Below are positions 3,786 through 39,971 of a DNA stretch of 41,053 bases, piece by piece. Within the stretch, counting starts at the first letter, position 1, and each line of letters begins with the position of its first letter. The position numbers and the translations under genes are program-made. The stretch covers positions 1-41,053 of the forward strand of contig LPNZ01006744.1 in assembly GCA_001655205.1 (NCBI GenBank), read 5' to 3'. The notes under the pieces were generated by a model. The model did no database searches. It was not told where the DNA came from and saw only the letters and a program-made list of their open reading frames with translations. The DNA comes from Lenisia limosa. Its lineage: Eukaryota; Protista; Breviatea.

Positions 3786-5366
3786 TCAACTGAACTGAAT
3801 GTCAAACCCAATATTGAGCAATTTTTTGTGAATTTCATGAACAAGTGTGATGAATACCATTTTCGAGCCTCTTTTCAATTTATACTCTATCTTTTTTTTG
3901 CTGGTAATAATGTTGAAACTCAGCATGCCCCCAGATACACTTGACATTGAATCCTGAAACGTGATATTACGTTTCACTTACTAGTTGCCCTAAGATTTGA
4001 ATTGAGTTTTCATTTTTCTTGTCAATAAAGAGAGCACCATTCCCAGCAAAGGTGATTCCATGAATTACCTTGGTGTTCCTTTGTTGTAAAAAGGCGAAAT
4101 TGGAACTGGCGACCGAAAATCTCCATGTGACGCTGAGGTCAGAAGAATCAATGTTAAAACAAAATCCAACCATTGCTCATCTCAAGGTCCATACTAACAG
4201 GTTCTACAGATCCCATAGAACTGAATAATAATAATAAAACAGCTTTGGAGAAAGAAATATATGGTGGTGGTGGTAGTGGGATTTTGATGTCATATCTACC
4301 TCTTGCTCAATGCGCTTACTTTGTAATTCTCTTAACAACTGTTTTAAGCGTGGCAGCCATACTGGGACAATTGAAATCTTGCGAACTTTTCATAACGTAA
4401 GGGCCATCTGGAAGTGGTAACGACTCCAAAGAAGGCAATTTGATAAGAAATGACCAAGCAACAACCCATCGCGTTGTTTTCCCCTGTGTTAACTGAAAAT
4501 GTAAACCTGATACAGAGTTCCAATTGCAATTGTTGCTTTCAGAGGCCGAAGCTTTGTTACAACTTTGGATAGAGTCTCCTTTTTGCCCGTCATCGATGTG
4601 AACCAGGTCACCTAACAAAAGTAATAAAATCAAACTTAGTCATCAATTCTTCCCCACACACACCTTCTTAGATAGCTCAGTTGACTCCTCCACCATTTGG
4701 CTGATGAAACGTTCTTCCCCTCCCTCTGTTGCCAGTTCCACAGATGACGCATCCAGGCATCGGTCGCCCCTCTTTTCAACTTTCTCATCAAGCCTGTAGA
4801 ACGGAGGGTTGCACATCATGAAGTCGAACCGGTCGTGGGAGGAGGAGAAAAGGGGAGGAAGAACAACGGAGGGGTTTTCATTAAGGACCAATTCAATCTG
4901 ATCTTGCATTTGGTTCCTATAGACATTCTCAAGGGCAACGTCGTGAGAAAATGGATCAACTTCCGTGGCTACCATTTTTAAAGTTGGAAATAAGTTGGCA
5001 AAGATTAAGGGGAAGACACAGGAAGCTCCAGCCCCAATGTCACCACCAACAACATCATCTCCGATAAACTGACACCATGAAGGATGGGATTTGGTCATGA
5101 GAAGGAGGCTTTCAATCCACTTAATATAATGAAACCTGTTGGTTATTCCAGGAACCAATCTATTTTCAGGTAAGATGACCGACAGGTTGAAGTGGAACTT
5201 GAAGAGAACTGCTGTCAGAGACCGACAGCCTTCAGCCGAACTCCAGTCTACTGTGTTTCTTGACGATAAATACAAAAATATCACCGTACCCTCGGACATA
5301 AGGCCTAATTTCTGGATACTTCTCTGCTAGTTTTCTGAAGTCAATGAAGCCTAATGTTTTGCTCAT
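3786..5366 (-). CDS. METTL16: U6 snRNA m6A methyltransferase METTL16 / RlmF family (3' end below ~4316 uncertain)
   Basis: ATG at 5366 gives MSKTLGFIDFRKLAEKYPEIRPYVRG|NTVDWS...LPENRLVPGITNRFHYIKWI. It has the SAM-binding motif DIGAGASCVFP and the catalytic motif FDFMMCNPPFY, followed by EGGEERFISQMVEES, WFTSMTGKK and TLYQ|GKTTRWVVAWSF. Introns found at 5259-5289, about 4609-4660 and 4484-4506. Confidence 0.9.
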
Positions 5367-15956: not shown

Positions 15957-18900
15957 ATGTCTGATGTTTATATAACTGAGCCTGATCAGGTTCTAGTTCC
16001 CAAGGTTTGCTTTTTTTCGCTATTTTCACCCCTACCTCCAAGTTCTATTACAATTTCTGACGTATTCAGGTGAATGCTAGTGATCCTGAGGAATGGGCAC
16101 CCAAGACAATCATGGAAGTCTTTGAAGACTCCTGTGCCGTTCGCGGTAATAAGGTTAGCTTTGCGGGTGGCTTTTTAGAATGCTTAGATGATCATTTGTA
16201 ACCTTTTCTCAGCCTGCTCTTTGGAGAAAGACTAATGGCGAGGCTTACTCTCCAATCACCTGGAGCGAATACAGAACTGATGTAAGAAAAAAAGGATTAC
16301 AACTTTCTCTTTTTTTTACAGGAAAGTATTTTGTTCATAATCATGCTTTTTGGGGAGAATTGTGAGTATAAGAGATTTTGACAAAGGCATTTTGGACTTC
16401 CGACGATGACACCGCAGGTCTTGCGTGCTGCTCGTGCAAGCTTGAAACTCGGCCTTCCTAAACACCATGGAGTTGCTATCCTTGGATTCAATTGTTATGA
16501 GTGGTTCGTTGCCAAATTTGGCGCAATTTTCGCAGGAGGAATTGATGCAGGTGTCTACCCAACTAATGGTTTGCCCCTTTTGCGTTTTTTTTTATCTACT
16601 ATGTGTTGCGTGTTGTTGTATCTCGCTCTTCCGGTTGCTTCCGATAACTTCTTTTTTAGGCCCTGATGCCATTGCTCATCTCGTCAACAACTGTGAAGCT
16701 CACATCGCCTTCGCTGAAAGTCCTTCAGCCCTTGCCAAGTTCTATTCCATTCGTGATCGCGTTCCTTCCATGAAGGTATTCCATGTTCTTCAAATCATTT
16801 CTCTCCATTTTCTTCTTCTTACAATCCCTTATAATCAACCACCCAATTAGGTTCTTGTCCTGTGGGGTGATGAAGAAGTTCCCGAAAGTCTCCCTTCCAC
16901 TGAAGAACTGAAGATCATACACTGGACTGAGTTCCTGAAGGTTTGAAATCCACTGCAATTTGCTTGTGTCTCAACGTGAGTTTCTCTTACGAATTAGCTT
17001 GGAGACGACACCGAGTTGGAGCCCCTTCTCCAGGACCGCATTTCCTCTCAGGTTCGTTTCTTTTGGTCAATTGTGAATTTTTTTTCCCCCTAGTATTCTT
17101 TATCGAAATTTCCTTCGTTTTTCTCCCCAGGTAAGGTGCTGCAGAATCGACTGACCTGGCCTTTTTTTTTTGTTGTTTTCAACCTTCGTGTGTTGCTAGC
17201 CAAACAGATTTTGNNNNNNNNNNNNNNNNNNNNNNNNNNNNNNNNNNNNNNNNNNNNNNNNNNNNNNNNNNNNNNNNNNNNNNNNNNNNNNNNNNNNNNN
17301 NNNNNNNNNNNNNNNNNNAACAACTGGAGCCGCTAAGGTTTGCCGTTTGCATGTTTTGTTTTGAAAAGGGCCAGTTCTATTCCTTAGCAATGCTTACCAT
17401 CTAGGGTGTGATGCTTACTCATGATTGCGTGATGTGGTGTGCAATCAGTGCCGGCCGCTGGATTGATATTGACGAGAACTGCCGTGCGGTGTCCTTCCTT
17501 CCCCTTGCTCACGTTGCCGCTCAGATTATTGACCAGTATGCCGCTCTCCGTTTCGGTATGTAGGGAGTTGGAAAACAGTCTCATGCTGTTCCAATTGAAT
17601 ATGCTTTGATGATTAAGGTTTCCAAATCTACTTCGCCCAGCCTGACGCTCTGAAGGGCTCTCTTGGTGACACCCTTCGCGAGGTGCGGGGGGTAACTGTC
17701 ACATGGTTAACGTTTTTTCTGAGCTTTTTAATCTGACACCCTGTAGGTCCGCCCCACACATTTCATTTCCATTCCCCGTGTCTGGGAGAAGATGATGGAG
17801 AAAATGAAGGAAATTGGAGCCAAGACTACTGGCGCTAAAAAGAGCATTGGTGAGTTCTTTTCTTTCTGCTTATGCTTTCGTTTTGGCTTTGACCTCTCTG
17901 TTACGGCACACTCTTTCACACCGCAGCTACCTGGGCCAAGTCCATTGGTCTGGAGTCCAACAGAAACCTCCAAGAGGGCAAGAGCAGACCTTGGGGCTAC
18001 ACCCTGGCTAACACCTTGGTGTTCAAGAAGGTTTGTGGGCTTTTTTTTTTTTTGCATCTCCTCGAATAAACCATGCGGTATCCACTCTTGATATCCAAAT
18101 TTTTTCAGGCTAAACATGCGCTCGGTCTGGACCAATGCCGCTGGTTCTGCAGTGCTGCCGCACCCATTTCAATGGAAACCCTCGAGTACTTCCTCTCCCT
18201 CGACATTCCCATTTGCCAGGTTCTTGGTTAGCCGGGTGTGAGGTGTGTGTTAGAACAAAGCAAGTCACATATTTAAGTAACCACCCAGGACTCTCTGAAA
18301 CATCCGGCCCAGCCACCATTGCCATTCCCCGTCTTCTTATCACTGGAAACGTCGGTAACGTCTTCCCTGGCACGGAATGCCGCATTGTCAACCCTGATGC
18401 CACTGGCGAGGGTGAAATTTGCTTCCGCGGCCGTCATCGCTTCGCTGGCTACCTCCATAACCCTGAAGGTGAGTCATCGCTAACAGTTCTAATGTTTGCA
18501 TTGCGGTTTCTCAATTTCTTTAGAGACAGTGAAGTCGATTGACACAGAGGGCTGGCTCCACACCGGCGATCTTGGCAAGATGGACGATCTTGCTTTCCTT
18601 TCAGTTACTGGTAGACTCAAGGTGTGTATCGGGATACTGGCTTTGAGACCTTATTTTGACACCCTAGGAGCTGATCATCACCGCTGGTGGTGAGAATGTG
18701 GCCCCTATTCTTATAGGTTCGTGGTGGACACATCTCGCTTTATCTTGGTTTACGTCGTGATCCGATAACTCACTGTACAGAGGACCATATCAAGGCTGGC
18801 TGCCCGCTCCTCAGTAATGTTATCGCCATCGGTGACCGTCAGAAGTACCTTACTTGCCTTCTTTCCTTAAAGACCGAAGTGAATCTCGAGACTATGATTC

Positions 18901-19696: not shown

Positions 19697-22574
19697 CTAT
19701 GAGCCAGATATGGCAACCTGCTCCTCACGCGGTCGGCTCCGTTCCAGACTTCTCGGCTTCTTGACATCACGCGGCTTAAAACCTCGAGGCGCCACCGGGG
19801 TGGACTTTGACAGGCTCGGCGTCGGCAGCGCGGATAGTGTTGCCTTCTTCGGCAGCTCATCCTAAAACATAAAATGCTACTGGCATGGGGCAAGTGAGTT
19901 TGGAATCACAATCATGCGCACCTTAACTACGCGACGAGAAGATGAGAGCGGCTGGGGAGGTACAGTATCGTGGGGACGCTGAGGGGTTAGTGGAGGAGCG
20001 ATAAACAAGAGACCGAAAGAGTCTCAAAAGATCCGTCAGAACAAACCTTTCTGGGGATAGGGGTTTGGTAGGGGCTGGAGCGACTAGGGGGAAGAGGGGT
20101 TTTGGGGGAAGGTGTGACCATGTTTGGTCGTGAACGGGGTGGCATAGGAGTTCTAAAAGGTGAGCTTTGTCAAGAACAAAAAAGAGATAGCTTTGGAATC
20201 CCACTCACGAGCCAGGGGCAAGAGGAAGTTTCATGGGGGTGGACTTGGGGAGGGGAGTGACGGCGCTCTCTGGGGAGCCATGCATCGGAGGTGACGACTT
20301 TTTGGGTGTTGCAAACTGTGCGTTAGCTGCTCGCCTTGCCATGTACTCCTGTGAGGTCAAGAATCGTTGTCCGAGTCGGGCTTTATTTTTCTTTTTTTAA
20401 AAAAAGCACTACACAAGATGAATGATACATACCTCTTTAGTGATAGGCTTCTTCGGGGTTTCTTGTTCAACCTCCTTCTGCTTACTAAGGTGGTGAGAAG
20501 AAGGCAATGAGATGAGAGAGCTGTGAAGCCGATAAACACAAGCAAAGAATTTGCTCCCACCGACCTGGCAGGTCTTGGAGCGAGGGGTGGTGAAGGCCGA
20601 CGCTCGGGCATTGGTCCAGTGGGCTTCTTGATGGACACAGGCTACATTGTTAGAAACTTCGGGCGTGCGGGGGGGGGGGGGNNNNNNNNNNNNNNNNNNN
20701 NNNNNNNNNNNNNNNNNNNNNNNNNNNNNNNNNNNNNNNNNNNNNNNNNNNNNTCCGTTGGCTGAACACACAAGGGTTCATAACAACAAACAAACAAAGC
20801 CCAGCCAGTCGCTTCTGCAGCACCGCATCCCATCCTCCGTGGCTCACCATAAGGGTTTTTTGCTGTGTAGGGGTCTGAGCTTTGCGCTTAGCAACGTTGG
20901 ACTCCTTGAGCTTCCTCATGACGGCCTCACGCTTGCCGGCAAGGCTGTTCTTACGCGAGATTCGGTGGAATAACTCTGGGAAGGGGTGAAACAAAGAGGA
21001 ATGCGGAGCAGCAGCGACTTTGGTACCTACTTTTGAGATCATGACCAGGAGTCACCTCGTTGCGCATGATGACTTCGAAGTATCTCGGAAGAGTGATCTG
21101 CAGGGTAAGAGGAAGTACTGGTGGACAAAGCCAAGAAAAGTCCACATTATGAACTCAAAAGACGAAAGAAAGAAGAGGATTACTCATACCTGAACTGTGG
21201 TGGACTCATCCTTGTTGATGACGTGTGAAGCGAACTTGATGACTGCGACGGCCAGTTCACGACCGGTATAGACAAGAGAGTTGGGCGAGAAGGCTCTGTG
21301 GAGGTCAGCCATATGATTCAAGATGGTGGCAGCAAGTGGGGAGATAGCATACGATGCGTTAGCGAAGTCCCAGCTTTTCTTCCTGAGTTGCTTGAAAATC
21401 TCACTATCGTGCTTGAAATGTTCTGAAGGAGTCAACATTCGTGTTTTTTTTTGTTGAACGAGTTCTTGTGAGTTACTTGAGATCCGCTTACCAGCCAGTG
21501 CGGGGAACAGCTCGAGAAGATGTACGTGGGGGGTGAAATCAGTGAAGTCAAGATTAAAGTCTTGTAATGTAAGAGAGGGGTTGAAGATCAACACAGCCTT
21601 TCAAAAACGAAGAATAGTGTGTACCTAGTCTTTTGAGAATGTCAAGTTCAGCCGAGATCACACGGTTCTTGAAGGATTCATATTCCTTCGACTCCATCCA
21701 GGTATTTTGGTAATCCTGAAGATAAGACCGATCCTTGGTGAGAAGGATCAAACCTGTCGTTCTTTCGCCGTAGTCCATGACTCTGAGAGTTTGGGACTGA
21801 ACCATAGATGTGCTCGCCAAAGAACATGTTGGATTGATCGAGGGGTATCATTAACCTTGCCACTGAGGAAGACACAAGCTACGGCAACGAACTAGGAGCG
21901 TTATACCGTTCAGGAGGGCGGAGTTGATGAGAGAGTGCATGAAATGCGGTGCCAATTCATATTTTGCGCTGATCGAGAGAAGTTTTAACAACTAGTTTTG
22001 ACTAATACGACGAGTAAGGATAGGTATGAATCCCTAATTGCGTATGAACGTCTCAAAGCCGGATAATATTCAGTACAGTTTAATTTTTGACGACAAGAGT
22101 CGTTAATAGGACCAACCTTTGAATTCCTGACATAGGGAACAAGGCTCTTATCTTTAGGATAGTCGCCCTTGTGCTCAAGCAATTCAAATTGGAAATACCG
22201 GTGAAATAGCAACATAGCATTCACAATCACCGTCGTTTGACTGGAAAAACAGTCAGATAGTTTCATTCAAAGAACGAAAAAGTGACTTATTTTGGTTGAA
22301 ATAGGGTTAAACCACTCCCTATTTACAATTCAAGCTTCAGCGAAAGGTCTTTGATCATTTCGCAGCGGTTGAACACCTTCTCAAAAAAGTCGTCTTCGGA
22401 CATGCCAGCAAGCTGAGAACGAATAAAACAGGGTTTGTAAAAGCATATTCAGGTTTAAAAAACAAAACCGAATGAACATATTGCTTTAACCCCAATTCTC
22501 ACCAAGGCAGGATTCTTGGCCAAGTCCTCCTCTCGAAAGAGGGGGAAATGATTCCCGTCGTAATCCTCAAACAT
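19697..22574 (-). CDS. Transcriptional cyclin (cyclin T/K/L family) with long S/P/K/R-rich C-terminal tail
   Basis: MFEDYDGNHFPLFREEDLAKNPAL|LAGMSEDDFFEKVFNRCEMIKDLSLKLEL|...TVIVNAMLLFHRYF...|FVAVACVFLSGKVNDTPRSIQHVL...YESFKNRVISAELDILKRLG|...TPHVHLL...SWDFANASY...RELAVAVIKFA. This matches the two cyclin boxes of CDK9/12/11 cyclins (FHRF, ACLFLAGKVEETPR, E..IL..LGF). The tail spans an N-gap; TAG at 19697-19699. Confidence 0.85.
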
Positions 22575-22929: not shown

Positions 22930-25900
22930 TTACTCGATGTTGAAGGCACTGAGAGGGGTCTCCACATACATGGGTCGGACCTGGAAGTGTCATCAAAAAC
23001 CAGAGCAGGAACCTGCATCAAATCCACCAAGTTTCTTTCAACTTTACAAGTTGATATTAACCCGCATACAGTACGCTTGGTGACATTCTCGTTGTAGTTG
23101 ACACCTTCCTCCCAGAAAAGACGGCCCATCATGTTATGGCAGCTATCGGTGTGAAAAATAGAAAAAGGAGAAAAAAAAAAAAGAGATACAAACAAAAATA
23201 AAATATGTTTAAACAAACATGACACATACGTCTTAGACTGGCAGGCACCCATTCCAGTTCTGGTAAGAGCCTTGATTTCGTTCTCATCAGTGACACCCTT
23301 TGCAACAAGCTCGCGGATCTCGCCAGCAGTTACGCGCTCGCAGCGGCAGATGATGGCTTCGTCAGCGGGGGTATCAATCTCAAAGCGGTCCACAAGGGGA
23401 ATAGAAGGAAGAGTGAAGATTGAGGCAACCTAAGACATAACAAAGAATTCAAGGAAGAACCAAGATGAAATCAATTCCCAATTCACATACCTTGGGGGCG
23501 ATTTCACGGGGGACATCGATGGTGATAAGGTGGGTATTGGAAACTTCGTCATGGTCCATATCTGTGACTTCAAATTTGCCAAGAGGGGCACCATCATCAT
23601 CCATGACTGTAACTTCAGATCCTTCCTCAACCTAGAGCATTAGTTATTTTATTTCAAGAGTGTCATTTTGTCGCTGATACTCTTTCTCCCTGTACCCACA
23701 TTTTCTTCCCAGAGCTCATAAGGCACAGTGACGGAAGCAAGAGATTCGTCTTCGTGATCATAGTCAATGAGAGTGATAGCCAGTGCAGGGCATTGTGAAA
23801 CGCTGCAAGTCAGTCAGTGTTACACAACAAGATAATTTCAACACAGCATCAAAGGCGCGCCGCTTACCATTTGGTGCAGCCGTCGCAGTCTTCGGCTTCT
23901 CCAACGTAGCTGGGCATTGCAGTGATACCGTCGCCTCCAATTTTGATGTTGTCGCGAGTGCAAGCGTCTTGACAGGGGCGGCAGGGAATGTCTTGGAAGC
24001 CTGGGGGGAGGAGGGGTATGAAACTAAAAAAAACAAAACAAAAAAACACAGTGGGGGATGGGGAGGGAGTGGTTAATGTAAAAAGACAGGTATTCTGCAA
24101 ACAGTGGAAGATAGGAACGAAAGTCTCGTTAAACTTAATAGGATCGGGGTGCTTGCGGCCAGTCACGGGTCCGGGGTGCATCTTAAGGACCTGCTCCTTG
24201 ACCTTCCAGTCATCGGGGATTTCCTTGTCAGTGGCTCCAAGGTCCTTGGCAATAGTCATACCAGCCATCTTACCGCCGAACATGGCAGAGGATGCCTCAG
24301 CTAAATGATCAACCGACTTTTCAGCAATCAACAGTCGCAACACAAAGATTTATTCCTGTCCACCAACCGATTTCCTTTGCGTCACCAGCGGAGTAGACAG
24401 GGATGCCATACTCCCTAGCCTTCTCAACAAACTCGTCACAAGGCTCAAGGCCGGTGGCGACCATAACACAGTCAACTTCGTAGTCCTTCTCAGTGCCAGG
24501 AATGCGCTTGAAGTTCTCGTCAACCTCGGCAATGGTGACACGTTCAACCTATTTGCGTCACAATTTTGAAAAAAAAAAAAAAAACCCTCGGTGATTACAT
24601 TTTCAAAAGAGCCCCTGTGGTGTTGTTATTTGATAAAATGACAACAGCTTACGTGGTCCTTGCCATGGGCTTCAACAATGGTGTGCTGGGTAAGAACAGG
24701 AGTACCAAGACGCTAGAGATGGTCAGAACAAGAAGCAAGTATCTAGTAAGAGCCCAGATGCTTACAATGAGCTTGTCAACATGAACCTTGTATCCAGAGC
24801 AGGTCTTAGCGGCTTCAACGACAGCAGCGACCTCAATTCCGGCCTGGATGGCGTGGTAGCCACCAATGACACCAACATTTCCAGCACCGACAATGAGGGC
24901 GCGCTTGCAGGGGCGGACAAGATCACGGTTCACAAGGTTCTGGAAGGCTCCAGCTCCAATCACACCGGGGAGGGTGTTACCAGGAAACGAAAGAGACTTT
25001 TCACGGGCACCAGTGGCGACCATAAGTTTCTTGGGACGGATAAGGTCGTACTTGTCGACGCCTTGGACAAGACCAATGACGTCATCGGAGAACACACTCT
25101 GAAAGAGTCAACTGAGTCATGTCCCACTGAAGACAAGAGATGAGGAAACCAGAAAAGTGCACTGATAACCCACAAACCACTGCATTGGTGTCGAGCTGAA
25201 CCTCAACAGAGGGGTATTCACGGACCATGCTATCGAGGATGCGGCCAATTTCGAATCCACGAGTACCAGCCCAGGAGTCTTCCTTAGTGCCGAAGAACTT
25301 GTGAGTTTGAAGAACCTGAGGGGGGGTCAGCCAAGTGGAAATTTGAGGTTAAGGACTGCAGACAGTATCAAAAACGGCTGGTTTAGAAAAGATAACGGTA
25401 GCCCAAGCAATCCCAACCGTGATAACAACTATCCAAGCCCAGCATACAAGTTTTCCTCCAAGTCTGTCCTTATCATCAACAAGAAGGACCTAGTAGAGAG
25501 TGAGATTCTTGAGAAGTGGGAGAGTGAGTGTAACGAAGCTGAGTAACCAAACATACTTCGACTCCAAGTTTGCCAAGCTCGACAGCAGCAGAGAGTCCAG
25601 CGGGGCCACCACCGACAATAAGAACATCAACATCGCGGATTGGGCGATGGGGGGCGGGAGGGGGAACCTCAGTGACAAGAGGAAGAGGAGGCTATTGGGG
25701 TAAGTGGATGTGGGAGAATGTCAAAAAGGAGCAATATATTCAACATGTTCTTCAAATATATTCAAGGGCACGTAGGAGGCTCATAGAAGACAAGTTCTTA
25801 CCAGTCCAAAGAGAGATTCAGCTTCAAGGCCTTGAGAGATCTTGGTCATGCATCCTTTAACAGCATGTTCATCGACAATCACTTGACATTGCCCACATTG

Positions 25901-26529
25901 ACCAATGGTGCCTGGAAAAAATCAAGGAAGTCAATCAAGATCCTTTCTGAAATTGAAGGAAAATACAAGTTGCCAAAAAACCAAATATTTTGCGACTCTA
26001 TTTAAGTTTAAACAGAATCCGAAGATGATAGCAAGAAACAGCGAAGAACTACTGCCCAAATTTATCCGTTAGACTAAACTGGTTTATATTCAAGCATTAA
26101 TTTTGCCAATAAACCTTATAAAAAAGTAGCTTACAGAAATAAGAGCGGGGAGAGCCATCCTTAGGGTGAGAGCCCGTAATATCGATTCCATTCGCAACAA
26201 GAGCGGTGGTAAGATACTCTCCTTCAAATCCCTCAAGTTCCTTGCCGTCAAACTTGAATGAAATGGGCTTCCGATCAGGAATCTCAACAACGGGGTGCTC
26301 AGTGATACGACGTCCAGTGCTTTCAGGCATAACATCAAATTCTAAAAGCAAAGTGAGTCTATGAGAGAAGCTTAGAGCTAAAAAAAGTCGGAAAGTTTTA
26401 TTTCGGGAATGATAGATTATGTTGTTAACCCTGAAAATACAAGTTATTCTTACTTAATGCAGCAGATGCCATAAAAGAACGGGCAGCAAATCGGCTGGCT
26501 GAAATAATTAATTGAATAACTGGAAGCAT
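22930..26529 (-). CDS. Fused [2Fe-2S]-FAD/NAD(P)-oxidoreductase-2x[4Fe-4S]-BFD[2Fe-2S] protein (PDH2-type proline dehydrogenase alpha+gamma+delta / HcnAB-like), ~725 aa, 16 exons, with putative organellar presequence
   Basis: RITEHPVVEIP...FDGKELEGFEGEYLTTALVANG...SYF|CTIGQCGQC...GC (2Fe-2S); DVLIVGGGPAG (FAD); LGGKL|VLQTHKFFG; ATGAREKSLSFPGNTLPGVIGAGAFQ; IVGAGNVG; AGDAKEI|AEASSAM; H|CFQDIPCRPCQDAC and CDGCTK|CVSQCP (two 4Fe-4S); IICRCERVT...TRTGMGACQSKT|C (BFD); ends VRPMYVETPLSAFNIE* (TAA 22930-22932). All junctions are GT-AG and keep frame. The leader exon (26454-26529) is less certain than the body, which starts at ATG 26330. Confidence 0.92.
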
Positions 26530-27399
26530 AGTATCGTAATCACAATAACATTTATCTAATAATATTTAATTAACAAAATAGCTATTAGGAAACGAGTATG
26601 AAAGGTATTTGCCTTCATATGCCACAAAAATCAACTTGATCCATTGTACATACCTGCCTGAGTTGAAGCCTTTAGGCCCAAAGAACCAATTGCACGAAGA
26701 AAAGACATACTTTTATATACTTATTTAATGTAATAAAAGTATTTCTATGAATGATTTTTTTTATTTTTTTTTTAATTTAAAGTGAACTGAACTTTCCGAC
26801 TTCCGGTAATGCACCCTGTTAAGTTGTTGTCCGTTCCGACTACAATCCCACCCAAATCCGACCATACGCAGCTCCACTCCTCCACTCTGGCTCCACTACC
26901 ACACTGCCACGTTTCAAAAAATCGGTTACAAATTTTAAAATCAAATCAACAAATTGTTTTCTGTGTATGTTTCTTTGTGGAGTCAACAGTTGGATCTCTA
27001 TGGTTCCTAGTTTCAATAGAGACTTTTCAGCAAAAAAAAATTGAATAATAGCAATCAAGGAGGATAGCAATTTTGTACTTAAAGGCTTAAATAGGATTTT
27101 ATAGTGGTTGATATCTGTTGTGTCTCTGCTTTACAGAGTAGAATTATCCATCTCCAGGAAATAAAAATAAAAATAGAAGTGTATTAAATAAGGTAATCAC
27201 AAAACTTTAAACCAGATATCAAAGGATCTGGGGTCGGAAATGAATGTTTCAAATTGTTCAACTTTCAAAAAGACCGAATATCAACCGCTCTAATGTCTAC
27301 ATCATCAATATATAATCAGTGTGAAATAAGAACAGCAAGGAGAAAATTTGTGAAAACAGAAATAAAACACAATAATTAATAAAGAGAAATCTATGCTAC

Positions 27400-30300
27400 G
27401 TGTATCTCAAATGTGTGATAACAGAAAGAGCTCTCAAAAGAATAGAAGAGTGACTCACTCCTTGTATGATTCTCTACCAACCTCAGCTCTGTATCTAATA
27501 TACTTGGCTCGGTTTTTGGTGAAGGGGATTGACTCACAACTACAAGATTAAACAACAATCAAAGGTGAAACCCATTTTACTCCAACATACTGCATGACAA
27601 AGTTCTCATAGCAGGGAACTACAAAATCCATTGAGTCGTTCTACGAGGTTAGTTTCGGAACCGCGTATCCAAATCTCTTAGCCAGCCTCACTTTAATTGA
27701 CTGCTTTAAGGCAGGGTCAGCCACAGCGTAATTTCGTTGTTGCCTCATCTCAATATCCAATTGGAGATTAAAAGTCTAAGATGGTTAAGGCAGAACTCTT
27801 GCGCTATTTCATATGTATGTAACAATGGACACAATGTCAACCGACTTCCCCGACCGAGAAAGCCTGTTTGAGCAAATGATACTTCTTGCTTGGTACAGTT
27901 GAGGCATCAAACTGCTCATCAATGTCCGCTGGAAACTTCAAGTCGAAAGACACGTCACGGATTCCGGCCAAAGCTCTCTCGAAGCTGCATGTATGATAAT
28001 AGCAAATTACTGTGCCTTCAAAAAACTGCCAAACCTATCCAATATGAACTGTCTCTGATGCTCTTCAACAAAGTTGAGGAGTCGGGTCTCAAGAGATTTG
28101 GGAACATGTTGCTGAAATGGATAAGCTACTTGCAAAGCCCCAATTTAAGAACCTCGAGCTTGTCCCCATGAATGTTGTTGGCAATGTAGTGTAGGTTGTT
28201 GAGGTTGAACAGTGTGCGCAAAGAGGCGTGCTTGTAGCCAGCTGATTTCGATTCCATGTTGTCAACAAGTGCCTCAAGGAAACTGCCTGATTTGGTGAAA
28301 GGAGTCAAAAAGTGGGAAAGAACAAGATAAGTGAAGATGAGTCTACAAGTTTACTTATTGCTGTAATTTTGGTAGGCAGCTAAAGAGCACCATATTTCCA
28401 GCCAACTAATTTGAGAAGAAAATGACGAAGATCCCTGTGGAGAGAACGATGAGCTGACAGAGGGATGTAGTGACATTGCCCTGGCAAGACGTTGGCGCTG
28501 TTTTAATATGTCATCTTGGGCTTCTCTATTGAATCAGTGGAACCAAATTGTCTTAAGTATTAAAATAAACTTTCTGCCCTCACGACGAGTTGGTATTGGA
28601 GTCTATTGAAGACCTCAGGGGGCTTCCACTACACGGGTTGGTCAAAATATGAATCATGAAGCAAAGTAAAAAAAAAACTATGTTTACTAATAGCTCCCGC
28701 TTCCCACCGATTAGACCTGGACATAAAGGTGGCCTCCAAGGCACTGGTATGGTCCACGATTGAGGAGAGTTTTGTGACAACAGCGACATAATCCATGAGA
28801 CGATGGAGGAAGAAAAGTGCCTGAAAGAGGTCAGATACAGATCATTATTATCCAGAAGTGAAATGTTACCCACATTTGATGCAAGGCTGTGAACAGTTCC
28901 ATCGGCAGGGATGGGCTTGAGAGGGTGATTTTCGATGAACGTAATTGCTGTTGGGATGATTGACATTACAGATTCCTTAAGTCCGTTCACTGTCTGTTCG
29001 AGAAGCAAGCTTGTTTCTTCACACTGGGTGGGGGAGGTGTAGATGAGATGAGGTCTGGACAGCGTGTTACTTGATTGTTGACACCATTGATATCAAAGAA
29101 TCAGGGCCATTTTGCTTACAGGTATGCATTCAAAGAAACCGTCCAGATGCAGTTCCAAAGCACTGAGTAGTTCGAAAACTATCAGTCCGGACACTGACAA
29201 GCCACTAGGAAGGGGTCATTGAAAACCCCAGTGAATAGAACAAAGGAGCATGCTTACATTGACAGGGACTTCGCTAATTTGGTAACAGATGAGCAGAGTA
29301 ACTCAATCATTGGACGGAGACAGCTGTCCAGGCTACGTTGTGAGAGTATTTAGAATATTGACCCACATTTGTTTGGAGAGGGAAGGCTCAAGTTCGTCAC
29401 CAAACACTTCTGAAAACAGGAGAACTTCCCCCTTTAAAATTATATCAGAATCTTGGTTCACAACTCAGCACACCTTTATGAGAACAAGAGCAAGAGGAAT
29501 GGTCTGGAGGAATGGATGTGAAGATAAGTCACTAGCGTCATGCCGCCTAGATTTCAGTCACGTATTGATAAAGCGAAGAACTGATGCACTGCAAGACATA
29601 CACAGCAAGTTGTTCTGATCGATGTATACGGTCTTTGAGGGTTTCGAGAAGGAATTCAGCGCGGTGTGTCTTGTATGTGTGGAACGCCGAATGCTATAAA
29701 GATAATAAGACAAATGCTGCAAAATCACCCCCCCCCCCCANNNNNNNNNNNNNNNNNNNNNNNNNNNNNNNNNNNNNNNNNNNNNNNNNNNNNNNNNNNN
29801 NNNNNNNNNNNACTCTGTCAAGTCTTTCTCACTGGCAAGTTCTGAATTGTAACATTAAGGTAAACTGATCACTGACCACGATAAGTCCTCACACGATTGA
29901 CTGAAGACAAAGCTCAATATCAGTGTCAGGACTCATCGCGAAACCACAAAATTCCAAATTACAACAAGTAACGAAAAAGCAGACCTATTTTGCCATTGGG
30001 AACAGGAACTTGCAGTTTGGAAGCCGAAATTGGTGTAGAAATTCTGCTAACGATAGCAATGAACATGGGTGTGAGGTGTCCGTCTGCCTTAGTCAACAAG
30101 TGACGCTGAGAGGATGATGTTGAATCAAGATATGCAATTCAGAGTATTATCTGATTTCTCTCAAAGCCCTACAATGCTATTGGCGGTTCTGTCAGCAGAC
30201 TTGAAATGACTGTGTTGAGTGATAATGTTCTGGCTTTGAAGCAAATCATCAACAGCATTTAGGTACTCTGAGAGGGAGTGCCGAGGACTAAACGATTACT

Positions 30301-31455
30301 TGTGAAAACTAAATAGCGATTTGTTTTGTCCCCCCTCCCCTACCCTTCTCTGACAATAGCTTCATGGCGACTTGGTGCAGTGAGCACTCCCAGGAACCGC
30401 TCAAACGAAACAATAACTTCTTCAATATCTGAATGTTTGAGCATTTTTTTGATAGTAAACACCCGTCTATTCAATTCTCACCCTCCCCACTATCATCAGC
30501 CATCGTGAGTTCTTTGGTGTTCTCATGTAATGTCTTGACTGAGTCCTCAATTCGGGATAAATTGTCATCAATGAGTCCAAGGCCTTGTGTCTATCATAGA
30601 TGAGATGGGAGGAAACCAATGCGTAAGTGTCTTGTAAAAAGGTTAAACAAAAACAGCATGCTTTATCAAAGAAATAGGATTTAACCGTTGCTTAACTTCC
30701 TGAATACAAACTAGACAAACCAAGGCAATGGACAATTTATTGATCTGGTCAGCCTGCCCCTCGATCCACTGAATTCTTGCTTTTTCATGCTCCAATCTAA
30801 GGTGTCAGTTGTTTGCGACACTTTGCAGCATCCAGTTTGAAGAAAGAGAAACAATAATCCATCACAGTAAGGTCATTCAGAGATCCATCCATTTGGAAGT
30901 CCTTGACCCACTTCTTCTTCCTCTCCTCACGCTCCCTCAGCACAGTGCCAATAATCCGCCGCCGTTCCTCCGCCGACTGAACTGCTGGTGTCGCATCAGC
31001 TACAAGATGAGATATTTCAGCAAAGCCAATACAACTTACATGCACCCAAAGGTGAGGCAGTGGGGGATGTAATCTACAAAATTATTCAAGAATTGAAGGG
31101 AATGAAATGATACACTAGGATACATCAAATTCAACTATGAGCCTGCAGTAGTATTCTCAAGTCATGTACATCTTTTTCCCTTCGGGCAATGAACAATATC
31201 AAAATAAAAGATGAATACAGAACACTTCCTTTCTATAAATATATTACGACCACTTGCATCAAATCAAATCAAACACAAGTTCATGCCGAACAGACCTGGT
31301 GTGACGACCTGTTTCGTCGACGGTTTGGGGTGACCGAGCTGTTTCCTCCAAGAACTACCAGAGTAAGAAGAGGGAAGCCAAGAAAAAGGCCAACTTGACT
31401 TTGGGCGAGGCCTGCGTCTTGAAACAATACCTGGAGACCCTGCAAGGCCATCCAT
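27400..31455 (-). CDS. EXO70: Exocyst complex component Exo70 (EXOC7); 3' end approximate
   Basis: Candidate ATG at 31455; N-terminal coiled coil IDDNLSRIEDSVKTLHENTKEL; PIPADGTVHSLASNV (DGTVHELTSN motif); LVDNMESKSAGYKHASLRTLFNLNNLHYI; TFNLQLDIEMRQQRNYAVADPALK; VVPCYENF; PFTKNRAKYIRY (KNPEKYIKY motif). Confidence 0.88.
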
Positions 31456-35000: not shown

Positions 35001-37787
35001 GCAACACTGAAAGGTAAAAAACATCTTTGGTGACAGTAATACAATTACGATACCAGGCTTTTTCAGAATAAAGTTGTAATATTAAAAGATGCCAAAAAAT
35101 ATCACAATATTGATTTTATTGAACCAACCTTTTATCGAGGAAGTCAACCTTATCAGAAAGAGCTTCACAGCGAACGGTGCTTGCTTTCAATTTCTCTTCA
35201 GCATCTACGACATTTTTCTCTTCATCTTGCAATAACTTCTTCAATTCTTCAATCTTTGTGGTCTTCTCACCGATTTCCTTTTCTTGTTCCCGAATTACTT
35301 CTTGTTTTGCTTCGAAGTCCTTTTGAACAGAGATAGTAGTCGACTTTTCTTCTTCAATCATTTCTTCAAATTCAACACGAGCCTGTGGAAAGGGATTATG
35401 AACATAGGTCTTAGATATTATCCAAACGTATCATATTACTCTTTCTGAATTAAGTACCCTCAAATATTATGATAATTCGACATCCACCAACTTGGTCAAA
35501 TCTTGAGTTAATGCGCTCATAATCATCCCTTAGCGAAACATTGACTTCTTCCTTCTCCAAAATAACCGCTTCCAATCGATCGATCGCGACATGTGCACTA
35601 CAAAGTTTCTCATCTGCCTCTTTTTGATGCAGTAAAGCGTCCTGATAGTTCTTATTCAGTTCTGAGATGCGAAGAGACCCTTCATCAACCTCAAAGGTGG
35701 CTGCCTCCAATTTAGACTCGAAAACAAACTTCTCCGCTTGCCATTCTTTTTCTCTGTCATTTTGGGCGTTTTCAAGACATTTCAAGGCTTGCTCAGCTTG
35801 CTGTGCAGCTTTATCCGTTAGCTTCACATGTTCCAATGCGTTATCTCGAGCAAGAACTGCTTCTAAACGGTATTAGGAAACGGATCTATCCCTGCAAGTC
35901 TACCCACCAGCTCTATTACGGTTAGCTTCATTGGCATCAGCGGCGGATTTGGCTGCAGCAGATTCAGCAACAACCGCACGGTAGTCTGACGCAGCTCGCA
36001 TGGAGTCAATTCGGACCATTTCCTAAAATGGCAAGTCAGTTGTTTCCTGATGTAGCTTGGGGGGCGATTATTATTCCCCAAATACCCCACCTTATTTCTT
36101 GCCTCCGTGGCCTCAACCTGAGACTCGGCCATTTGGACAACCGCGGCAACAGCGGCTGCCCTTTTCTGTGCTGAAGGCGACGACAAAGCAATGAGTGCCT
36201 GTTTACGTAGGTTGGTGATGGCGGGCGTCGCTGGCTCCCGCGATGCTGTTACTGGCGATATGTCGATCTGGGGGGGGGGTTACATTCTTTCTGGAGATGT
36301 TAGGAGTCCAAGACAATATAACATTGTTTAGAATATGACTAGTTGCAAGAACACAACATACCTGAATTGATGGTGGTGCGTTACGAGGTTCATTTGTATC
36401 CTCAAAGGTACTTGTAACATTAGTTCGGAGAGGGCTGGCAGGCTGGGACGATTATGATTGGAATTCAGGCATACCTGGGTTTGGGGGGAAGAAGGGGGCT
36501 GAGGAGTGAGTTTTTCAGGGGAAACACTTTGAGCAGTGCGCTTGGGCCTTCTTGTGGCAGGACGGGCTAAAAATGGGGTAAGTGATGTTGGGAGGAGAAA
36601 GTGCGTACCGGATTGAGGGGGTGAAGCTACGGCTGTTGATGATGCCTAATTGGTTAGTAACCTTTCTCTGTTAAAGAAGAGCCCGAAACGTCTCTATATG
36701 AGCAGAAATGAGCTCAAAGAGGAATTCTCTAGTTAAGCTAGTTACAATGTCTCCTTCTCATTCAATGCTTCTTCCCTCTTGCCTATCAGCAAAAACTCAA
36801 ATACAAAATGATCGTTTTGTTCGTAGATATAGAATCAAAACTCAAAAAACAACTTGTCTTAATATCAGGACTCCACACGATTAATTGAGGAAATTCATTT
36901 TTAAATTTGAAGTGATACATATCATACTGTAACCAAGACTCCATATTAGACACTTTCATTTCACATTTTCAAATTAAAGAGACGAACCAAATATGGAAAT
37001 GTTACGACTTGTCCAAAATGGAGGTTCTTTTAAAAAACATCTGAGGTTGCAAAAATTAACCTTTTTAAAAATGTTGTTCATAAAAATACCATTTTTTACC
37101 ACTTTTTCTTTTTTTAACTACAGACGCTGCCAATGTTACATGCCCCCCCCAAGAATTCCAAAAGCCCAACCCAACTTTCTTAGTTGGAGACACCGATGCT
37201 CGCTTAGTCAGGACTCGGGCACCCTTTGCTGGGGGTGGTGGTGCTGGCTTAGACTGCATGCCATTTTTGAGGGCCTGGGGGGGGGGGGNNNNNNNNNNNN
37301 NNNNNNNNNNNNNNNNNNNNNNNNNNNNNNNNNNNNGAAGGAAATTTCCTGGGGGGGTCATGAACACATTGCTAAATGTTTGGGAAAATGGGTAGCACAC
37401 TGACAGAAAAGGGATGAAAAACAATGAAAAAGGAAGCGGATTGCCTCGCGTTTCTTCAATTACCTTTATATCCCAAATCCCAATCCAAATGATTGTGAGC
37501 GAAACTGTCTGGCATTTAGAACAAGTCAATTTGAGGGAAGAAACATTTCAAAATAGCTCGAGTTTTTGCGACCATCAGACCTGTAGTCTTGCAACAGGAG
37601 GGTAAACAACAGTCCCATCCCCATTCGGCGACTTTGTTGATCGTGCTGTTGAGGTCGCGGAGATTGTCTTAGAAGGGGACCTTGTTGTCGTTGAGGAAAT
37701 AAGACACGCAGACGCAGCTGCTCTCCTTGATTGCTGTAATGAGTGTGATGGAGGGGGTGGCGCTGGTTTGGCCCGATGAAACGACAT
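32031..37787 (-). CDS. Large coiled-coil protein with P/S/T-rich N-terminus (cytoskeletal/centrosomal-like); exon linkage partly uncertain
   Basis: ATG at 37787 (MSFHRAKPAPPPPS...), a second KPAPPPP exon, then long E/K/Q/L heptad-rich exons (35450-35836, 35116-35361, 34289-35044, 33534-33764, 33214-33426). Ends TEEGKRRAQNVLSLLQNDPQ* (TAA 32031-32033). No globular domain recognised. Confidence 0.65.
32635..32712. mobile_element. MITE family A (78 bp, Tc1/mariner-type), copy 1, intronic
   Basis: TA|CAGTGACCGGGACAAGTCTTGACCGATTT...AAATCGGTCAGGTCTTAACCCGGTCCCTG|TA. It has 29-bp TIRs (24/29 match), TA on both flanks and a CAGT terminus; 63/78 identical, ungapped, to the copy at 39501-39578. Confidence 0.85.
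36868..36978. mobile_element. MITE family B, copy 2 (right end truncated or decayed), probably intronic
   Basis: GGACTCCACACGATTAATTGAGGAAATTCATTTTTAAATTTGAAGTGATACATAT...AGACACTTTCATTTCACATTTTCAAAT aligns colinearly with 10816-10952; the right TIR is not found. Confidence 0.65.
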
Positions 37788-38279: not shown

Positions 38280-39971
38280 TCATCGCGCGATACCTTCGAT
38301 TTTGCTAATCTGAACACGACACAACGGACAGTCCGTGGCTTTGCTTTTTCGCACGCCTTGTCCACGCCACTCCTCCACGCACACCGCGCAAAACTCGTGC
38401 TGACATGGTAGCAGTCTTCGATTCGTCTGAAGGGTCATGGGGGGGGGGGGGGCNNNNNNNNNNNNNNNNNNNNNNNNNNNNNNNNNNNNNNNNNNNNNNN
38501 NNNNNNNNNNNNNNNNNNNNNNNNNNNNNNNNNNNNNNNNACAGTCAATGTGGTATGTACAAGTGTACACTTCTTCATTCAGCTGTAACCAAAGATTACT
38601 AATGAAGCAGCAATACTAATAGCACAGATATCATTCATGCCACACATTATGATTCTTGGTAAATAAGTCTAAAATTGGAAACCCACATATCCAAGTATTA
38701 TTTTCCTTTCATGACTGGAAAATGGTAAAGACATCAAGGTTACATTTCAATATGACTATTGGAGTTGTGTTCGTGAATGCAGTGCTAGAATGAAGCGTGC
38801 TTCCGCAGTACATTTAGCAAAACAAAGCAGGGCAACATACGGGCCTTAATCGCTCTTACATTACCTTTACCATGCTTACCATGTTAATATAACAAATTGA
38901 ACACAAATCTTCCTCATCCTCCGAATCCGCCTGGAAACAGTGACAACAATATTACAATTATGATAAAATATGAGCAAANNNNNNNNNNNNNNNNNNNNNN
39001 NNNNNNNNNNNNNNNNNNNNNNNNNNNNNNNNNNNNNNNNNNNNNNNNNNNNNNNNNNNNNNNNNNNNNNNNNNNNNNNNNNNNNNNNNNNNNNNNNNNN
39101 NNNNNNNNNNNNNNNNNNNNNNNNNNNNNNNTTATTTGCAAAGAAATATTCAGAGATTTCTCTATTATTTGGCCATTATTTTGTTAAACCCAGCATACAT
39201 CAGCCTCATTCTCCTTCTTTTCGTGTATAGCGGAGTAAAATGCACGCCCCAGCGCAATTATTGACACACTCTCTTCAAACGACTAAAGGAGTTTCAAAAA
39301 AGATACAATGAAATCCAAAAATTTCAGAAAAAGAGCTTTCTCCCTGTTTAATCGAAATGAAGATTAGAAGTAAAGTAATCTCAAATGGTAATAAACATAT
39401 ACCATAAGAGGCACAGGACTAAATATATACTGAATCCCAGGCATATCTTTCGAGATATTGAAACCCATTTCTGCGTTTCAAGAACTTCGTTTTCGATACA
39501 CAGTGAACGGGATAAGTCTTGACCGATTTGCTACATGATTTCCCAAGGAAAATTGATCAAGACTTATCCCGGTCACAGTACATACATGGAACAATAATGT
39601 ACACACAGAGGATGAATTCCCTTCGCAAATGAACGGAAATATTAGGCAAGACAACTATCGTGGAACCCAGTAAATAAAAAAAGGCTTGAATAGAAGTAAT
39701 ATAGCTGCGGTACTAAAATAAAATCTACCCCTGAAACAAGATAGTAATAAAAGTCCTGAGAAGATTCCACAAATCAACAGCCAAAGCTTGTGCGAACCTG
39801 TCCTCTCATCTGTTGCAAGGCATTTCGCAATCCTGAAGGCCCCAATTGCTAAATAAGTAAATACAGGCTGAAAGATATCCGAGAAGAGCGATGTGTATCT
39901 CTCCAAACCTTCGTCAAGAATCGTCGCACTTCCTCGACTTCTTTTGGTGTTGGTGTCCCTTTATTCGACAT
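38280..39971 (-). CDS. Putative RING-HC (C3HC4) zinc-finger E3 ligase; interrupted by two N-gaps, linkage of 5' exons to the RING exon inferred
   Basis: The last exon reads TNRRLLPCQHEFCAVCVEEWRGQGVRKSKATDCPLCRVQISKIEGIAR* (C-x-H-x2-C-x2-C...C-x2-C). The first Cys pair was not located and probably lies in or before the gap. Candidate first exons: MSNKGTPTPKEVEEVRRFLTK|QLGPSGLRNALQQMRGQ (ATG 39971). Confidence 0.55.
39501..39578. mobile_element. MITE family A (78 bp), copy 2, inverted relative to copy 1
   Basis: CAGTGAACGGGATAAGTCTTGACCGATTT...AAATTGATCAAGACTTATCCCGGTCACAG|TA; TIRs match 25/29. The left flank is CA (probably decayed TA) and the right flank is TA. Confidence 0.85.

Follow-up and report, generated by a model that had tools for sequence, protein, structure and literature searches.

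A stretch of 41,053 nucleotides (nt) from the breviate Lenisia limosa (contig LPNZ01006744.1; 'the window' below means this whole stretch) carries on its minus strand an intron-rich gene for a 734-residue protein. This protein is best explained as an NAD(H)-linked subunit, acquired by lateral transfer and probably targeted to an organelle, that carries electrons in a two-component flavo-iron-sulfur dehydrogenase with a DAO-family partner, a reading to which we assign a probability of roughly 0.6. The family to which it belongs is huge in anaerobic bacteria and archaea, where nobody has shown its function, and at least five anaerobic protist lineages have acquired and retained it, apparently for use in their reduced mitochondria. 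It is a candidate for an overlooked step in the anaerobic energy or amino-acid metabolism of eukaryotes. The protein is not of a new kind, nor is its fused architecture a eukaryotic innovation; since the 'three-subunit fusion' is the normal prokaryotic form, the interest lies in its role in eukaryotes.

The coding sequence runs from 26708 to 22930 and consists of 17 exons separated by 16 introns of 53-223 nt, all with GT-AG boundaries (Table 1). It was spliced by hand and by script and then corrected with polyA RNA-seq contigs of one run in the same study, whose source runs, dated 2016, comprise a polyA metatranscriptome and DNA. All 16 exon junctions are carried by one 2235-nt polyA RNA-seq contig at a depth of 117, and the spliced model translates into a single open reading frame (ORF) that has no internal stop and ends, with its stop codon, at 22930. 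A first-pass annotation of the DNA letters had spliced 15 exons into one ORF, and the RNA junctions define exactly 15 exons between 22930 and 26341. Within the range then given (22930-26330) the 15 exons and the stop codon stand, while two further 5' exons (26498-26454 and 26708-26654) fall outside it. Separate transcripts, or stop codons between the modules, had also been considered at that stage; what is found is a single mRNA contig and a single ORF. The original observation holds, and the gene model has become exact.

The start codon is placed at ATG 26708, five codons 3' of an in-frame TAA. A start at ATG 26529 was rejected because the RNA joint 26498->26654 puts this ATG within intron 1. 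Within that intron (26499-26653) ATG 26529 is start-codon-like in opening a frame that is continuous into exon 2, and a short upstream ORF of three codons (ATG 26551) immediately precedes it. The RNA joints also led to the rejection of acceptor 23012 for the last exon (the acceptor is set at 22980), of donor 25181 (by the joint 25098->25178) and of the junction FHCLQNTC/FQ of model B (by the joint at 24103).

From its amino terminus the protein consists of a 43-residue extension, a Fer2_4 [2Fe-2S] domain, FAD and NAD Rossmann folds, a dicluster ferredoxin-like domain, a small beta domain and a BFD-like [2Fe-2S] domain. Pfam was run on single exons; in full-length homologues the same families score better (for Fer4_7, E-values of 2.6e-6 to 8e-5, compared with 6.7e-3 on exon 12). 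Every motif string quoted in the first-pass annotation can be located in the spliced product (Table 1), and the module order and 16 candidate cysteine ligands that it proposed are borne out by the spliced product, by Pfam and by an alignment of 57 family members. These cysteines (103/108/111/123, 502/508/511/515, 540/543/546/550 and 655/657/690/695) are conserved in 98-100% of the aligned members; conservation does not extend to the four cysteines that remain. The two GxGxxG motifs and LQTHKFFG show little or no variation in the family. The amino-terminal [2Fe-2S] spacing, C103-x4-C108-x2-C111-x11-C123, fits the definition C-x4-C-x2-C-x11-12-C, and the BFD/A3-like domain has the spacing C655-x-C657-x32-C690-x4-C695. 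Both [2Fe-2S] motif types are known from dehydrogenases of the opine, D-hydroxyproline and L-proline kind (PMC4575208). The second dinucleotide fold, in which GAGNVG is followed by an acidic residue, suggests NAD(H) as its ligand.

The family is very large in prokaryotes. A word-indexed search with the homologue from Cantina marsupialis as query returned 7450 matches at E<=1e-20, the best 120 of which are all 689-789 residues long and of the same architecture; a full HMMER scan with exon 8, the longest exon, as query likewise revealed a very large family. The fusion had been presented as a peculiarity of an intron-rich eukaryote, which does not hold, as a single chain of about 695 residues is the prevailing prokaryotic form (7450 matches). 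The earlier interpretation is partly supported: its family assignment and its electron-transfer role are sound, and the fusion was inherited from prokaryotes. The window protein is 55-56% identical, and collinear over residues 44-728, to proteins of 693-695 residues from metagenome-assembled genomes (MAGs) of Deltaproteobacteria/Desulfobacterales; close examples are P0261, P0230 (Deltaproteobacteria MAG) and HOM93899.1 of Candidatus Saccharicenans. The prokaryotic proteins of about 695 residues have the same five modules, all 16 cysteines, both dinucleotide motifs and LQTHKFFG, whereas the window gene differs from theirs in its 16 introns, its 43-residue extension and the lack of an adjacent DAO gene. 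In a scan of species-representative genomes the family occurs in more than 15 phyla of anaerobes, with full-length relatives in Desulfosarcina, Desulfobacterales, Anaerolineae, Elusimicrobiota, Acidobacteriota, Bipolaricaulota, Cloacimonetes, Actinomycetota, Thermoplasmata, Methanobacteriota, Promethearchaeota, Spirochaetota, Thermotogota, Caldisericota and Atribacterota. Prokaryotic members carry the automatic names 'sarcosine oxidase subunit alpha' or 'FAD-dependent oxidoreductase'.

Gene context points to a constant partner. In the prokaryotic loci that have downstream sequence (L001-L002, L006-L024 and L027-L031), a DAO-family gene lies about 20 to 600 nt downstream of the large gene, most of the gaps being shorter than 150 nt. 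Natural variants are built on the same core: at the N terminus P0002 (L086, L087) has a flavodoxin and P0029 a polyferredoxin together with an FlpD domain, and in P0033 a GltD-like NADPH module is inserted. These variants hint at the redox partners of the family. A search for the ferredoxin segment as a stand-alone protein gave 138 short proteins, mostly gene fragments; two of them on long contigs were rejected, being by appearance frameshift-broken calls rather than true subunits. Stand-alone Fer4+BFD clusters listed in an atlas for Bacillota and other phyla are leads only.

Homologues that share the architecture, at 40-53% identity to the window protein, are present in other anaerobic protists, where public databases carry them under misleading automatic names. 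Those of Cantina marsupialis (P0008, EP01029_P022149; 711 residues) and Anaeramoeba flamelloides (KAJ3443836.1; 3 introns) have an N-terminal extension, and those of Carpediemonas membranifera (P0034, KAG9389563.1; 1190 residues) and Chilomastix cuspidata (P0019, EP00767_P006179; 1218 residues) have a DAO domain fused at the carboxy terminus. A further intron-bearing homologue lies on a Logan contig of SRR22387828 (L090:1-3001; GC 43%), where the gene is resolved in its interior part. No characterised eukaryotic member was found, in keeping with the expectation of the first-pass annotation, and our literature search found no paper describing the family in protists. The Anaeramoeba paper reports a transferred 'FAD-dependent oxidoreductase' from Deltaproteobacteria, which might be the homologue considered here.

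Introns and phylogeny bear on how the gene came to these protists. Two of the five L090 introns (34, 142, 34, 37 and 37 nt) are shared with the window gene, exactly and both in phase 0, after residues 139 and 244; by our own estimate, which takes 15 window introns and about 2070 alignable nucleotide positions, the chance of two exact matches in five is about 5e-4. None of the three Anaeramoeba introns is shared with the window gene. In the Anaeramoeba gene (L005:10001-16359) the first intron measures 3.8 kb and the other two are short; one of its introns lies two codons away from an L090 intron, in the same phase. In a maximum-likelihood tree the window protein groups with L090 (support 100/68), and this pair is joined next by Cantina (99/94), then by Anaeramoeba (100/97), by Carpediemonas plus Chilomastix (83/39) and by the flavodoxin-fused P0002 (96/89), so that a branch supported at 96/89 has all eukaryotic rows and P0002 on the same side. 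The contigs of P0002 have long non-coding flanks. These comparisons favour a single acquisition that later spread from one anaerobic protist to another, but do not prove it, because several eukaryotic rows are long branches; the branch of the named eukaryotes alone is also weak (83/39), which tells against it. The gene offers a clear case of a transferred prokaryotic gene that has been heavily filled with introns.

The 43-residue extension is without counterpart in the prokaryotic homologues, which start opposite residue 44 (exon 3, RRITEHP). Its first 35 residues include five K/R and no D/E, and basic N-terminal extensions of about 20-30 residues, again absent from prokaryotes, are found in Anaeramoeba and Cantina. 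Because the extension is basic, because prokaryotes lack it and because Anaeramoeba and Cantina have comparable ones, it is likely, though unproven, that it directs import into a mitochondrion-related organelle.

On the best reading, the gene passed by lateral transfer from an anaerobic bacterium or archaeon into the protist nucleus, where it gained its 16 spliceosomal introns and the N-terminal extension that most likely sends the product into the mitochondrion-related organelle. In the scheme that we infer for the partner, substrate, carriers and cell location of the protein in Lenisia limosa, the product would serve an amine or amino-acid dehydrogenase as its large electron-transfer subunit, a role indicated by the constant DAO pairing in prokaryotes and by the DAO fusion in two protists. 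Its catalytic partner would be a DAO-family FAD protein of the glycine, sarcosine, proline or D-amino-acid dehydrogenase kind, encoded elsewhere in the genome. Electrons may then pass from the amine substrate to the FAD of the partner, through the BFD-type [2Fe-2S] and the other clusters, and on to the FAD of this subunit, which would exchange them with NAD(H). The extra clusters suggest a second route, in which the dicluster ferredoxin-like domain and the [2Fe-2S] at the N terminus would serve a low-potential carrier (ferredoxin, for example), and the flavodoxin, polyferredoxin/FlpD and GltD-like fusions point the same way. The 'electron wire' to a partner flavoprotein or ferredoxin that the first-pass annotation had proposed is thus a reasonable idea, and one that the gene context strengthens.

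Several observations weigh against this reading. The RNA contig ends at 26707, beside an A-rich tract and one base short of the proposed ATG, and the targeting call is a matter of composition judged by eye. NAD(H) binding is read from a motif only, and the entry title of the solved subunit PH1363 records bound ATP, which presumably sits in the fold equivalent to the putative NAD(H) fold. A tblastn search with the fused Carpediemonas and Chilomastix proteins found no DAO-family partner in the 41-kb window, and the Anaeramoeba gene has no DAO neighbour; in a search with the Carpediemonas DAO domain, the best 120 matches are all prokaryotic. The prokaryotic DAO partners have near-equal, sub-threshold scores for ThiO, DadA and SoxB. 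We found no characterised family member with this architecture, and no NCBIfam model reaches its cut-off for the large protein (the nearest, soxA TIGR01372, scores 147-156 bits in close homologues versus 1164); for the latter reason the family, common as it is in anaerobes, is yet unnamed and uncharacterised.

The structure modelled was that of P0261, the closest full-length homologue (56% identical to the window protein), with a pLDDT of 85.6 and a pTM of 0.85. The best fold matches of this model are sarcosine oxidase alpha (1vrq_A, 2gag_A) and, with a TM of 0.79 on the target, 1y56_A, the proline dehydrogenase alpha of Pyrococcus; two bifurcating complexes, NfnABC and StnABC, come next. A sequence search of solved structures with close homologues gave the same first three, 1y56_A (PH1363), 1vrq_A and 2gag_A. 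These sequence and fold matches of close homologues support its place in the SoxA, archaeal proline dehydrogenase alpha and HcnB-OoxA kind of flavoprotein.

PH1363 (1Y56) is the best or near-best solved relative (E 1.4e-19, TM 0.79), at about 18% identity. Like the window protein it carries a Fer2_4-like domain at the N terminus and a BFD/A3-like domain at the C terminus, with a core of two dinucleotide folds between them. Its partner is a DAO-type beta subunit, just as that of the prokaryotic large protein is a DAO-type protein; PH1363 is, however, only 493 residues long and lacks the ferredoxin-plus-beta insertion of about 170 residues. The first-pass annotation had equated the subunit order and content with pdhA-pdhF-pdhX of Thermococcales; the subunits of that complex are presumably of about 54, 19 and 8 kDa, sizes that would fit the three segments, and the scan of species-representative genomes gave only relatives closer than these. 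The existence of this heterotetrameric L-proline dehydrogenase complex (alpha-beta-gamma-delta) is documented (PMC8704557). Sarcosine oxidase alpha (1VRQ, 2GAG) has the same fold in its N-terminal half (Foldseek E 2e-30) and a DAO-type beta partner, but SoxA is about 965 residues long and the window protein (734 residues), which ends after the BFD domain, has no equivalent of its C-terminal half. That half is presumably a folate-binding domain, and SoxA is not known to have Fe-S clusters. HcnABC, OdhABC/OoxAB and D-hydroxyproline dehydrogenase share the two [2Fe-2S] motif types and a DAO-type catalytic subunit (PMC4575208). In enzymes of the HcnABC/OdhABC/OoxAB kind, a small subunit or domain bears C-x4-C-x2-C-x11-12-C, and the NAD-fold subunit bears C-x-C...C-x4-C (PMC4575208); unlike the window protein, they consist of separate subunits without a dicluster ferredoxin domain, are dye-linked and come from aerobes. 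The BFD spacing also differs, with 15-20 residues in the opine dehydrogenase (OpnDH) kind (PMC4575208) and 32 in the window protein.

FngABC offers a further comparison. This complex bifurcates between glycerol-3-phosphate, ferredoxin and NAD (October 2026 paper, PMC13689815), and is composed of a DAO+BFD subunit, an HcnB/OoxA-family NAD-binding flavoprotein and a [4Fe-4S] protein (PMC13689815). The core of the window protein is homologous to the FngB-type subunit of an FngABC-type locus of Clostridium paridis (31.6% identity, E 1e-27), as is its BFD domain to the one on the FngA-type subunit (39%, E 8e-9). The cofactor logic is the same, with DAO-type FAD, [2Fe-2S], NAD-binding FAD and [4Fe-4S]. 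In FngABC, however, the BFD domain is on the catalytic subunit, [4Fe-4S] is on the DUF1667 protein (FngC) and a Fer2_4 domain is lacking; FngABC also has a GlpA-type partner, whereas that of the prokaryotic large protein is of the ThiO/DadA/SoxB type. By these sequence comparisons the window protein resembles the FngABC family without being a member of it. The distant kinship suggests a concrete assay and gives a testable analogy.

Other functions have to be weighed. The protein might act without a DAO partner, as a stand-alone NADH:ferredoxin (or NADH:acceptor) oxidoreductase of the organelle that feeds or drains the ferredoxin/hydrogenase pool. Such a role would accord with the lack of a DAO gene in the window and beside the Anaeramoeba gene, with the existence of flavodoxin- and polyferredoxin-fused variants, and with the NADH dehydrogenase activity that, in the heterotetrameric proline dehydrogenase of archaea, the alpha subunit shows by itself. 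We consider it improbable, in that a DAO gene adjoins the large gene in the examined prokaryotic loci and DAO is fused to the homologue in two eukaryotes, while unlinked genes are normal in eukaryotes and absence from one window tells little. An enzyme made of this subunit and a DAO partner could also be flavin-based bifurcating or confurcating, coupling amine/imine, NAD(H) and ferredoxin as FngABC does with glycerol-3-phosphate. Amine oxidation by NAD+ alone is uphill on general thermodynamic grounds, which speaks for such coupling. The same argument has been made for glycerol-3-phosphate (PMC13689815), and the cofactors here are those of FngABC but richer, including DAO-type FAD, the BFD [2Fe-2S], an FngB-like NAD-binding FAD and [4Fe-4S] (PMC13689815). 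The position of NfnABC and StnABC as the next fold matches after SoxA and proline dehydrogenase alpha, and the flavodoxin, FlpD and GltD fusions in the family, are consistent with this. The case is nonetheless one of analogy, at about 32% identity over the core and for a family known from sequence; the FngB motif Gln-Cys-Ile-His is Leu-Gln-Thr-His in the window protein, and the characterised opine, D-hydroxyproline and proline dehydrogenases are dye-linked and make no use of NAD (PMC4575208). Bifurcation is unlikely. More tentative still is its fuller form, in which the protein, with an unlinked DAO partner, would be part of a bifurcating amino-acid (amine):NAD+/ferredoxin oxidoreductase in the organelle, its module acquired once and passed among unrelated anaerobic protists. 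Such an oxidoreductase, if real, would connect the breakdown of amino acids, or the reduction of imines, with the pool of ferredoxin and hydrogenase.

The GenBank name of the Anaeramoeba homologue (KAJ3443836.1) would make the protein subunit B of an anaerobic glycerol-3-phosphate dehydrogenase. This name is automatic, and apart from it the core is distantly homologous to FngB, as the BFD domain is to GlpA/FngA. Such an identity is very improbable: FngB is no relative of E. coli GlpB (PMC13689815), the NCBIfam matches of the homologues include no GlpB model, and FngB lacks the Fer2_4, ferredoxin and BFD modules. Moreover, the adjacent prokaryotic partner is without the BFD domain of GlpA/FngA and matches ThiO, DadA and SoxB (8e-34 to 3e-22) far better than GlpA (3e-9). 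The best full-length matches of the protein are prokaryotic, as they would be if the stretch were bacterial contamination or a chimeric assembly. That explanation is refuted by the 16 GT-AG introns spliced out in polyA RNA and, with intron-bearing eukaryotic genes on both sides of the gene on the same contig, can be set aside; the whole stretch is also spanned by a single DNA contig of the source run.

Table 1. Coding exons of the electron-transfer subunit gene and flanking eukaryotic genes in the window (aa, amino-acid residues of the spliced product)
Feature	Position	Strand	Basis
Whole coding region, 17 exons	22930..26708	-	RNA junctions and translation
Exon 1, aa 1-19, ATG and beginning of N-terminal extension MSFLRAIGSLGLKASTQA	26654..26708	-	RNA joint 26498->26654
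Exon 2, aa 19-34, second part of extension SRFAARSFMASAAL	26454..26498	-	RNA joints 26498->26654, 26341->26454
Exon 3, aa 34-103, end of extension, RRITEHP 44-50, first half of Fer2_4	26135..26341	-	Pfam Fer2_4 E 5.3e-10
Exon 4, aa 103-139, [2Fe-2S] Cys103/108/111/123	25802..25911	-	Pfam Fer2_4 E 6.2e-5; Cys invariant
Exon 5, aa 140-184, linker and GGGPAG 166-171	25557..25691	-	Pfam FAD_binding_3, Pyr_redox_2 N-terminus
Exon 6, aa 185-198 VLLVDDKDRLGGKL	25448..25489	-	RNA joints; D, G, G, K, L invariant in family
Exon 7, aa 199-244, invariant LQTHKFFG 200-207	25178..25315	-	RNA joint 25098->25178; family invariants
Exon 8, aa 245-355, second dinucleotide fold, GAGNVG 315-320 then VVEA 337-340	24766..25098	-	Pfam Pyr_redox_2 E 3.2e-7
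Exon 9, aa 356-375	24653..24712	-	RNA joints
Exon 10, aa 376-436, end of flavoprotein core (IPGTEK 391-396, GDAKEI)	24368..24548	-	Weak Pyr_redox_2; RNA joints
Exon 11, aa 436-502, linker to split-codon Cys502	24103..24300	-	RNA joint 23999->24102 fixes FHC/FQDIPC
Exon 12, aa 502-546, dicluster C-x5-C-x2-C-x3-C and C-x2-C-x2-C (HCFQDIPCRPCQDAC 501-515; CDGCTKCVSQCP 540-551)	23868..24000	-	Pfam Fer4_7 E 6.7e-3
Exon 13, aa 546-580, Cys550-Pro, start of beta-rich segment (VTVPYE 570-575)	23700..23802	-	RNA joints; beta strands in P0261 model
Exon 14, aa 581-627, beta-rich segment (VMDDDGAPLGKFEV 589-602; IDVP 618-621)	23491..23631	-	RNA joints; no Pfam family matched
Exon 15, aa 628-694, BFD-like [2Fe-2S], Cys655/657/690 (CRCERVT 655-661; GMGACQSKTC 686-695)	23230..23429	-	Pfam Fer2_BFD E 1.1e-9
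Exon 16, aa 694-718, Cys695 and following helix	23070..23142	-	RNA joints 23142->23230, 22978->23068
Exon 17, aa 719-734 VRPMYVETPLSAFNIE and stop	22930..22980	-	RNA joint; RP..VE motif conserved in family
ALG6/ALG8 glycosyltransferase ORF	313-783	+	Exon-sized ORF match
Methyltransf_10 RNA methyltransferase ORF	4643-5299	-	Exon-sized ORF match
AMP-binding enzyme ORF	18135-18542	+	Exon-sized ORF match

The flanking genes, which encode an ALG6/ALG8 protein, a Methyltransf_10 RNA methyltransferase and an AMP-binding enzyme, are eukaryotic. The upstream neighbour (27146-30500, minus strand) is represented by separate RNA contigs of about tenfold lower depth, and RNA depth falls to zero between it and the gene studied here. 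This neighbour contains at least 13 short introns of 34-185 nt, GT-AG in all listed joints; its listed introns and the 16 of the studied gene all end in AG and are at least 34 nt long. Six runs of N, which represent scaffold gaps, occur in the window (17214-17318, 20682-20753, 29741-29811, 37289-37336, 38454-38540 and 38979-39131), none of them within the studied gene and one within the upstream neighbour.

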